A stretch of 64,000 bases of DNA, from contig OZ116708.1 of the NCBI GenBank assembly GCA_964199315.1, forward strand, positions 7,254,001-7,318,000. The letters run 5' to 3'. The notes beneath the pieces were generated by a model. That model did not search any database and was not told where the DNA came from. It saw only the letters and a program-made list of their open reading frames with translations. Both the position numbers and the translations under genes were made by a program. Positions 11,502-12,365 of the stretch are shown in pieces (position 1 is the stretch's first letter; each line of letters opens with the position of its first letter). The DNA comes from Orbicella franksi. Taxonomy: Eukaryota.

Positions 11502-11675
11502 CTAGAAAATAAATAATACACGACGGGAAAAAACATAGTTTAATAAATGCAAATTAACTCTGAAAGCGCTAAGCACGATTCGTATGAAAGATCCAGCGAA
11601 AAATAAGACAAACGGAAAACAACACAAAAGAAAACTAGAACCAACTACACCTTGATCCTGGGTATTGCTGTCTAG

Positions 11676-12365
11676 TCACTTTGCCTGTTGGTTGGCAGGA
11701 TTGGAAGAGGAAAGAACATTCGGGCAGGAAGCTCGCCAATGTCCAGGTTTTCCACAGGAAAAGCAAAGTCCGGCAGATCTGCCAACGGAAAGCTGTTGAT
11801 TGACCCGAGTAAAGGAATTAGGAATTTGGCCGACGGTGAGCTGCGAATTTCTTGAGACAGGTATTCCAGATCGGCGCTGTAATCCCAGACCACGTGGAGC
11901 GAAGCGTTTCGAGGCTCTAGCCGCTCTCGCCTCAGCTCTATAGATTTTCTTCTCGTCTTCTTCGTCATCCGCCAAGTCGTGATGTTTATATTCCAAAACG
12001 GTTTTCCAACCGTACGGCGACTTATCAGCCAACAAACTTAATTTTTGCCGATCTTTAAGCAAAGACATACCCCGATCCAACGCTTCCTTGGTCCTCAGAA
12101 GGTCCTTACGCTCAAGAGCGACGCTAGCGTCTTCGACAGCTTCCATGACTGATTTGTTGGCTTTAAATTGCTCCTCGTTACTCTTCTTCTTGAACGAAGG
12201 TGGAGCATCCCGCTTTAGCCTCTTGATCTCAGACATCTGCTCCGCGGCATTCGAATCATTAGATCTCTTTAGATCAGAAATTGAAGTGGAAACTAAGTCC
12301 TTAATCTGGCCAAGCAGATCGCGATTGTTCTGGGCAATGATCTCTTTAACTTTAGCTTCATCCAT
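11676..12365 (-). CDS. gag: Gag-like ORF1 with CCHC zinc knuckle, 229 aa from MDEAKV
   Basis: CFSCGKPGHWRASC knuckle; LADKS.YGW..V.EY motif typical of DIRS-order gag; ATG at 12365 directly follows repeat A1. Confidence 0.88.
   Translation of the reverse strand: MDEAKVKEIIAQNNRDLLGQIKDLVSTSISDLKRSNDSNAAEQMSEIKRLKRDAPPSFKKKSNEEQFKANKSVMEAVEDASVALERKDLLRTKEALDRGMSLLKDRQKLSLLADKSPYGWKTVLEYKHHDLADDEEDEKKIYRAEARAARASKRFAPRGLGLQRRSGIPVSRNSQLTVGQIPNSFTRVNQQLSVGRSAGLCFSCGKPGHWRASCPNVLSSSNPANQQAK

Follow-up and report, generated by a model that had tools for sequence, protein, structure and literature searches.

A putative intron beside a UGA-CUAG stop codon at the gag-pol junction of a coral DIRS-order retrotransposon

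The element and its gag-pol junction

The window analysed here is a stretch of 64,000 nucleotides (nt) from the coral Orbicella franksi (assembly GCA_964199315.1, contig OZ116708.1, positions 7,254,001 to 7,318,000), and all positions below are counted from its first letter. On its minus strand lies a copy of a tyrosine recombinase (YR) retrotransposon whose gag and pol reading frames are separated by a stop codon, a short linker and a tract of 149 nt (Table 1), and it is this junction that is considered in the present study. The reverse transcriptase (RT) of the element matches Pfam RVT_1 (E = 2.8e-11) and is accompanied by RNase H-like (RH) matches (E = 2e-4 to 7e-3), while the Phage_integrase match in the open reading frame (ORF) at 9275-8067 identifies the integration enzyme as a tyrosine recombinase instead of a DDE integrase. 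Split direct repeats (12370-12557 repeated at 7788-7974, and 7959-8038 repeated at 7421-7500) follow the layout A1...B1-A2...B2 instead of one with inverted terminal repeats and an internal complementary region, and no terminal inverted repeats were reported in the element's repeat analysis. The element is a DIRS-order YR retrotransposon with ends of the PAT/Ngaro type. It has in common with both the PAT-like and the Ngaro-like groups Gag, RT/RH, a tyrosine recombinase, and also split direct repeats arranged A1...B1-A2-B2 (PMC6681497); a methyltransferase (MT)-like domain after RNase H separates the former from the latter, and the 152 amino acids (aa) past RNase H gave no match in Pfam, which was searched without a reference MT profile.

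Table 1. Features of the element in the window. A slash marks a splice boundary here and in the text.
Feature	Position	Strand	Basis and remarks
Whole YR retrotransposon copy with split direct repeats, ~5.1 kb	7429..12557	-	Copy alignments stop at ~12557 and ~7429
gag ORF, 229 aa	11679..12365	-	ORF list; CCHC zinc knuckle at 11768-11718 (Pfam zf-CCHC, E = 2.7e-5)
Candidate leaky stop context, Lys codon + UGA + CUAG (AAG-TGA-CTAG)	11672..11681	-	Direct reading; TGA = 11678-11676, CTAG = 11675-11672
Putative readthrough linker, 25 nt (LDSNTQDQ + first base, G, of an Asp codon)	11651..11675	-	Open in the gag frame
Predicted phase-1 GT-AG intron, 149 nt	11502..11650	-	Donor AAG/GTGTAG at 11653-11645; pyrimidine tract and acceptor at 11520-11502
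pol exon 2, up to the premature stop of the window copy	9904..11501	-	RT at 11028-10651; RNase H at ~10248-9964
pol remainder, beyond the premature stop of the window copy	9442..9903	-	Usual pol stop TAG at 9444-9442; no Pfam match
Tyrosine recombinase ORF	8067..9275	-	Catalytic domain at 8681-8112 (Pfam Phage_integrase, E = 5.7e-12)

An earlier note on this DNA had placed the stop, linker, donor, tract, acceptor and a TAA upstream of pol, and every one of these coordinates is right on the minus strand. It had also held that pol lacks an early AUG and is closed upstream. The pol frame, which is -1 relative to gag, is indeed closed by the TAA at 11556-11554, and its first in-frame ATG lies about 160 codons past the acceptor, where the RVT_1 match starts. 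The tract itself consists of 15% A, 15% C, 18% G and 52% T; its first base is 11650, it ends in ...tattttctAG with the AG at 11503-11502, and its acceptor side reads tattatttattttctAG/AC. Excision of 11650-11502 joins phase 1 to phase 1, as had been proposed, giving G+AC (Asp) followed by HESEALPLPFC and making the gag frame continuous with that of pol. The suggestion that the gag frame continues past the UGA through an eight-codon linker holds as far as the donor, but the opening does not end there; it runs for 57 codons to a TAG at 11504-11502, which contains the acceptor AG. Similarly, the statement that unspliced gag and pol are out of frame is true for the window family but not for three of the relatives described below (L078, L081 and L080), in which the two are in frame. 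The window copy carries a premature pol stop at 9903-9901 that is missing in most other copies; otherwise its frame runs to the usual TAG. The MT domain that the earlier note had named received no confirmation from Pfam.

The gag frame is open across the whole of the tract in three lineages (11502-11675 in the window, 1139-1322 in L078, and the decayed copy L013), over 57-58 codons, and in L078 it continues into pol. The low A content of the tract may be enough to explain this opening.

Within this genome the family comprises 12 copies that are 97-100% identical, all with the same gag-intron-pol arrangement. It is thus a young family, and too young for any test of selection. TGACTAG is kept in all copies that retain the end of gag, and the linker and acceptor are kept in all copies; one copy has a GTGCAG donor and another has two extra T inside the tract. 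Three of the copies, that of the window and two more on chromosome C11 (L002 and L003, around 6.66 Mb and 7.70 Mb), share both their flanking DNA and the premature pol stop, and are one segmental duplication, not three insertions.

The tract and the stop codon in related elements

Relatives were obtained from a search of the genome with the pol and gag proteins and from a search of public proteins with Gag, followed by retrieval of the contigs. The Gag search gave 250 homologues, most of which finish in K before the stop. Five intron-bearing lineages were compared, all but that of the window coming from other assemblies (Table 2).

Table 2. Intron-bearing lineages compared at the gag-pol junction. 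L079 is the sister of L078.
Lineage	Gag identity	Linker (nt)	Donor	Tract (nt)	Tract mod 3	Exon 2 start
A (window)		25	CAAG/GTGTAG	149	2	DHESEAL
L078	84%	25	CAAG/GTGTAG	159	0	DHEFKAL
L079	80%	25		159
L081	79%	22	CAAG/GTGTAG	156	0	DQESEAL
L080	74%	28	CAAG/GTGTAG	219	0	DLDSEEL
L083	69%	28	CAAG/GTGTTG	215	2	DLDSEEL

Common to all five lineages are a Lys codon followed by TGA-CTA(G), the linker, a GTGT(A/T)G donor and a (Y)nAG/AC acceptor. With its recurrence here and in the 12 copies of this genome, the arrangement exceeds what chance would give. The earlier note had predicted that the linker would be open and the phase of the intron conserved, and this is what was found: the linker varies in length, yet 22, 25 and 28 nt are all 1 mod 3, the frame stays open and the intron is in phase 1 throughout. 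Since the acceptor is AG/AC in every lineage, the junction codon would always be G+AC (Asp), and homologous pol sequence follows it. The intron had also been expected to diverge. Its length ranges from 149 to 219 nt and it shows no codon periodicity, whereas both of its flanks are periodic. Differences between lineages at the three codon positions are 14/8/37, 22/12/42 and 18/10/42 in gag and 14/19/40, 16/14/34 and 19/21/34 in exon 2, and they are flat in the intron (13/12/14, 17/14/16 and 12/14/14). Indels between the introns are many, with sizes of 1, 2, 4, 5 and 7 nt, and in-frame stops occur inside the tract of L081, L080 and L083. The best conserved parts of the intron are its first 15 or so and last 30 or so nt. 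L013, which is in this genome and belongs to the same clade as L078, L079 and the copy L058 described next, retains the stop, the linker, the donor and a homologous intron start. On these comparisons the tract bears the signature of an intron, which is neither that of a spacer with coding function nor that of an insertion that disables the element. Taken alone, the proposition that 11650-11502 is a genuine spliceosomal intron is one we regard as very probable.

L058 is a decayed single copy at 18.06 Mb on C11, the same chromosome as the window, and it lacks the tract. Its gag-pol region reads ...NQQAK-stop-LCSNPHDQ-Y-HEFKALP... in one frame, and the tract is absent to the base, with GATCAA-T-ACCATGAA where intron-bearing copies have GATCAAG/.../ACCATGAG. 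It is 90% identical over 402 columns to the intron-bearing L079 and groups with L078 and L079 (support 99/93) in an alignment of 717 columns covering gag and exon 2 with the tract excluded. When all intron-bearing rows were forced into a single clade in this alignment, the tree was 6.6 log-likelihood units worse (approximately unbiased (AU) test, p = 0.042). The simplest account of these sequences is that the intron was gained once and precisely lost in L058. For this to happen, an RNA spliced exactly where proposed would have been reverse-transcribed, and one base at the joint would later have been substituted. Splicing at the sites given in the earlier note is therefore indicated by an intronless copy nested among intron-bearing ones.

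In families B, G and D, which are without the tract, gag and pol are in one frame and split by a single TGA. The junction of family B reads ...NPK followed by TGA-CCC, TGA-CCT or TGA-CTC, the stop being kept in six loci of this genome and in L086 from another assembly, and one further, decayed copy has lost it. Family G (L084) has AAG-TGA-CTC, and family D (L061 and L065), with only about 46% Gag identity, has AAG-TGA-CTAGAT. From the stop to a conserved VKGRLR motif there are 39 aa in family B, and 42 aa in the window family after removal of the tract. The 40 codons past the TGA in families B and G have an excess of differences at third positions (8/8/16, 8/9/17 and 10/9/18), and in-frame ATG codons are absent for 159-169 codons after the stop, intronless relatives included. 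In agreement with the earlier claim that Pol needs a fusion to Gag, no copy among relatives with an undamaged pol ORF has pol open upstream over gag or an early AUG of its own. Because the intronless sister families share the gag-TGA-pol arrangement in one frame, the junction from which those of the clade descend is thus an in-frame UGA followed by C. The intron appears to have been inserted into a CAAG/AC site 22-28 nt downstream of this stop (25 nt in the window family).

Related YR families of the same genome (loci L032, L033, L035-L038, L043, L044 and L066-L071) show at least four gag-pol layouts: gag and pol may be fused in one ORF, a TGA or a TAG may stand in frame, or pol may overlap gag in the +1 frame.

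A proposed two-step route to Gag-Pol and its alternatives

A C follows the TGA in every family examined, and TGA-CTA(G) is found in lineages A, C, D, E and F; the exceptions to CTAG, L058 with CTAT and L080 with CTAA, are both decayed. Conservation of TGA-CTA(G), which the earlier note had predicted, extends to lineages whose Gag identity ranges from 46 to 84%. In families B, D and G a long ORF with no start of its own comes directly behind a single in-frame stop, and the same is true of A, C, E and F once the intron is taken out. The frame from gag through the linker to pol is kept across the linker indels, which suggests that translation passes through the stop and argues against independent initiation of pol. 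The sequence UGA-CUAG resembles the UGA-C(UA) type of alphaviruses and plant viruses. For mammalian genes it has been cited as the consensus that favours readthrough (bioRxiv 10.1101/2021.04.18.440353).

Taken together, these features suggest how the element might be expressed. The tract would be a U2-type GT-AG spliceosomal intron of phase 1, long kept in a clade of coral YR retrotransposons with split direct repeats. The unspliced transcript would yield Gag only, and would be copied back into DNA as new insertions; that unspliced RNA is the replication template is suggested by the retention of the intron in all multi-copy members. A fraction of the transcripts would be spliced at the conserved weak donor AAG/GTGTAG and the acceptor (Y)nAG/AC, and this would bring pol into the gag frame behind a single UGA. 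Ribosomes passing this UGA, with a Lys codon (AAR) before it and CUAG after it, would then produce Gag fused to Pol, with a length of about 920 aa. The amount of Pol would be the product of splicing efficiency and readthrough efficiency, and the weak donor may serve to keep most of the RNA unspliced. We consider it likely that Gag-Pol is made in this way, through a conserved intron and UGA-CUAG readthrough; the conservation of the junction is what we infer it from, both for the readthrough step and for present-day splicing in coral tissue.

A number of observations weigh against this proposal. Between the closer lineages the intron is conserved nearly as well as the exons (0.68-0.72 versus 0.71-0.76), and L078, whose intron is open and in frame, could in principle make Pol without splicing. 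The donor AAG/GTGTAG is a poor consensus match at +4 to +6. The spliced 27-mer has no match in the genome, and the window's own family is without an intronless copy there. As for L058, trees from gag only leave its placement non-significant (AU p = 0.057 and 0.15), and its base at the joint is a T where the spliced product would carry a G, which requires a later substitution. Contigs from two RNA libraries, which cover the element at a word depth of about 19-47, are colinear with the DNA across 11650-11502, and no junction of 11651 to 11501 was seen in raw reads, whose depth was negligible (18 reads in one run, none of them at the junction, and 0 in the other). Finally, Tca2, a Ty1/copia element of Candida albicans, has an in-frame UGA between gag and pol and makes Pol from the gag-pol RNA, yet its flanking sequence alone gave no readthrough in a reporter and a promoter was found at the junction (PMC2194720). 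Tca2 is thus a caution against equating a gag-UGA-pol layout with a mechanism, and it applies to the readthrough deduced here.

The RNA runs that contain the element are labelled coral metagenomes or coral samples. The predominant RNA in the two assembled libraries, or contaminating DNA, is unspliced, and a minority spliced form is compatible with these data. Unspliced RNA is also to be expected, because all genomic copies of the retroelement keep the tract. The appreciable depth of the element in the RNA assemblies and the youth of its family speak in favour of the proposal. Metagenome contigs of the Joint Genome Institute, scanned for a spliced 19-mer, gave three unrelated chance matches. 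A difference in word shares among the RNA runs (0.79 versus 0.93) was considered as a sign of a missing intron and was rejected, being explained by single-nucleotide polymorphisms (34 differences in the X9 contig).

It is also conceivable that the intron is real and spliced and that Pol is translated separately, by non-AUG or internal initiation, by reinitiation after gag, or from an internal promoter as reported for Tca2. The Tca2 layout need not mean readthrough driven by context, and TTG and CTG codons are present near the start of exon 2. Independent initiation would require conservation neither of the frame, nor of the stop context, nor of coding sequence next to the stop, and all three are seen. 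Once the intron is removed, gag and pol share a frame in every lineage for all three linker lengths, and families that lack the intron have them in one frame directly. The stop is TGA-C throughout, in most cases TGA-CTAG, and the codons right past it evolve as coding sequence, with no ATG for about 160 codons. These points make separate translation of Pol unlikely.

If the tract were instead a disabling insertion, the family would be non-autonomous, with a broken gag-pol link, and would be mobilised in trans by related elements. Copies that are 97-100% identical are in keeping with this, as open frames in them prove nothing, and so is the lack of spliced RNA, for which the read data are thin. 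However, the tract occupies the same base in five lineages whose flanks differ at 25-30% of nucleotides, the pol of the intron-bearing lineages is still under purifying selection, and a dead insert would not be expected to keep its GT, its AG and its phase while its length changes. We regard a disabling insertion as very improbable.

A route without splicing has a smaller chance still of being correct. Here the ribosome would pass the UGA, translate the tract, and then shift by -1 or bypass within the overlap of the two frames at 11553-11505. The 57 open codons would permit this, and the 49-nt overlap with the pol frame includes a run of six T. Against it, the overlap contains no in-frame X_XXY_YYZ heptamer, in one copy 2 nt are inserted into the T run, and the tract has no codon periodicity and many indels that are not multiples of three. 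L078, L081 and L080 would need no shift, and the tracts of L081, L080 and L083 hold in-frame stops. The unspliced relation of the gag and pol frames thus differs among relatives, unlike the fixed relation of a -1 programmed frameshift. The least probable explanation is that splicing from a donor upstream of the UGA takes out both the stop and the tract and makes readthrough unnecessary. Beyond the general possibility, it has in its favour an AG/GCAAAG at 11685/11684 that resembles a GC donor in the window family, but the phase of this site does not fit the 11502 acceptor and relatives do not keep it (they have GCC, CCA and GCG), and the sole in-phase upstream GT, AAT/GTTCTT, would delete conserved Gag residues. 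Other donors and acceptors were likewise checked by phase and rejected.

Splicing followed by readthrough, our preferred explanation, leaves the question of why the intron has been kept. Retrotransposons normally lose introns through their RNA-based replication. That the intron has stayed at the same base position over long divergence, at the point where Gag:Pol stoichiometry would be set, implies selection for it. It might act as a switch, in that its conserved weak donor would leave most transcripts unspliced, the unspliced pool would serve both as Gag mRNA and as the sole propagating template and the spliced pool alone would yield Pol, and the intron, with its conserved first 15 or so and last 30 or so nt, may also carry a cis signal for replication. 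Such a signal would account for intronless retrocopies that arise, as in L058, but found no families. We put the switch forward tentatively, as an idea that may well be wrong. If true, spliced and unspliced RNA would divide the work between them much as in retroviruses, and this would have evolved independently in a YR retrotransposon whose host is an early-branching animal.

Related systems and other features of the locus

To our knowledge, the Ogre elements of legumes, the nearest functional analogue among the systems considered, need no stop-codon readthrough after splicing. According to Steinbauerova et al. (2008, cited in PMC12786077), these long terminal repeat (LTR) retrotransposons of the Ty3/gypsy type have an intron between gag-pro and RT/RH-integrase that is spliced in part of the transcripts. 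The coral element would resemble Ogre in having a spliceosomal intron in its own coding region at the gag/pol boundary, in genomic copies that keep the intron, and in splicing that links the coding parts. It differs in being an animal YR element of the DIRS order, not a plant LTR element with an integrase, and in the UGA that would still have to be read through. In copia, BARE and EVADE, by comparison, subgenomic splicing removes pol and gives extra Gag mRNA, whereas in the coral element splicing would permit Pol; Penelope-like elements also retain introns (PMC3735527, PMC5580714 and PMC4209133).

The single in-frame stop between gag and pol, present in the coral element after the predicted splicing, is shared with the gammaretroviruses of the murine leukaemia virus (MLV) type. 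In these, a minority of ribosomes read through the stop and the ratio of Pol to Gag is low; the stop is a UAG and a pseudoknot lies downstream on unspliced RNA. Unlike MLV, the coral element has UGA-CUAG, with the putative intron 25 nt downstream. An Rfam scan of 11350-11800 gave no match, and 11690-11480 folds no more stably than shuffled sequences do (z = -0.08). A local hairpin can be drawn at 11634-11675, in which the CUAGA right after the UGA pairs with an intronic UCUAG and AUACC pairs with the donor GGUGU. It is present in lineages A and C and not in E or F, and hence is not conserved. The stop and the four bases that follow it are the same as in the readthrough genes AQP4, OPRL1, OPRK1 and MAPK10. 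These and the alphavirus and plant-virus cases are cellular or RNA-virus genes, whereas the candidate context described here is in a cnidarian retroelement.

No intron or readthrough was found to be described for DIRS-order elements in a literature search that did not extend to subscription reviews, and an earlier description is possible. The overviews of the order that were searched mention ORF overlaps, and neither intron nor stop codon was matched in their text. A candidate leaky UGA between gag and pol with a conserved intron right behind it is thus probably a new layout for the DIRS order, although both components, an Ogre-type intron and retroviral readthrough, are known elsewhere. If the proposal is true, the order would join the very few retroelement groups that depend on host splicing for Pol, of which Ogre is one, and the element would provide a cnidarian example of the UGA-CUAG readthrough context. 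Annotation pipelines would call such elements frameshifted or defective when they are possibly intact. The system might also offer a natural two-step reporter, of splicing and of readthrough, for studies of cnidarian gene expression.

Some minor features of the locus may be added. Between the pol stop and the coding part of the recombinase there are 25-nt direct repeats at 9286-9386, and after them comes a run of pyrimidines that finishes with an AG at about 9075. An N run (an assembly gap or masked stretch) is found at 13509-13958, about 1 kb upstream of the element. The 350 nt or so directly 3' of the element (7088-7436) have 20 or more matches clustered on C11 at 91-97% identity and form a local repeat array. 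About 20 isolated units of approximately 540 nt, equal to the 3' repeat block A2..B2 (7429-7971), occur on many chromosomes at 95-99% identity, and these look like solo-LTR-like remnants of this YR element.

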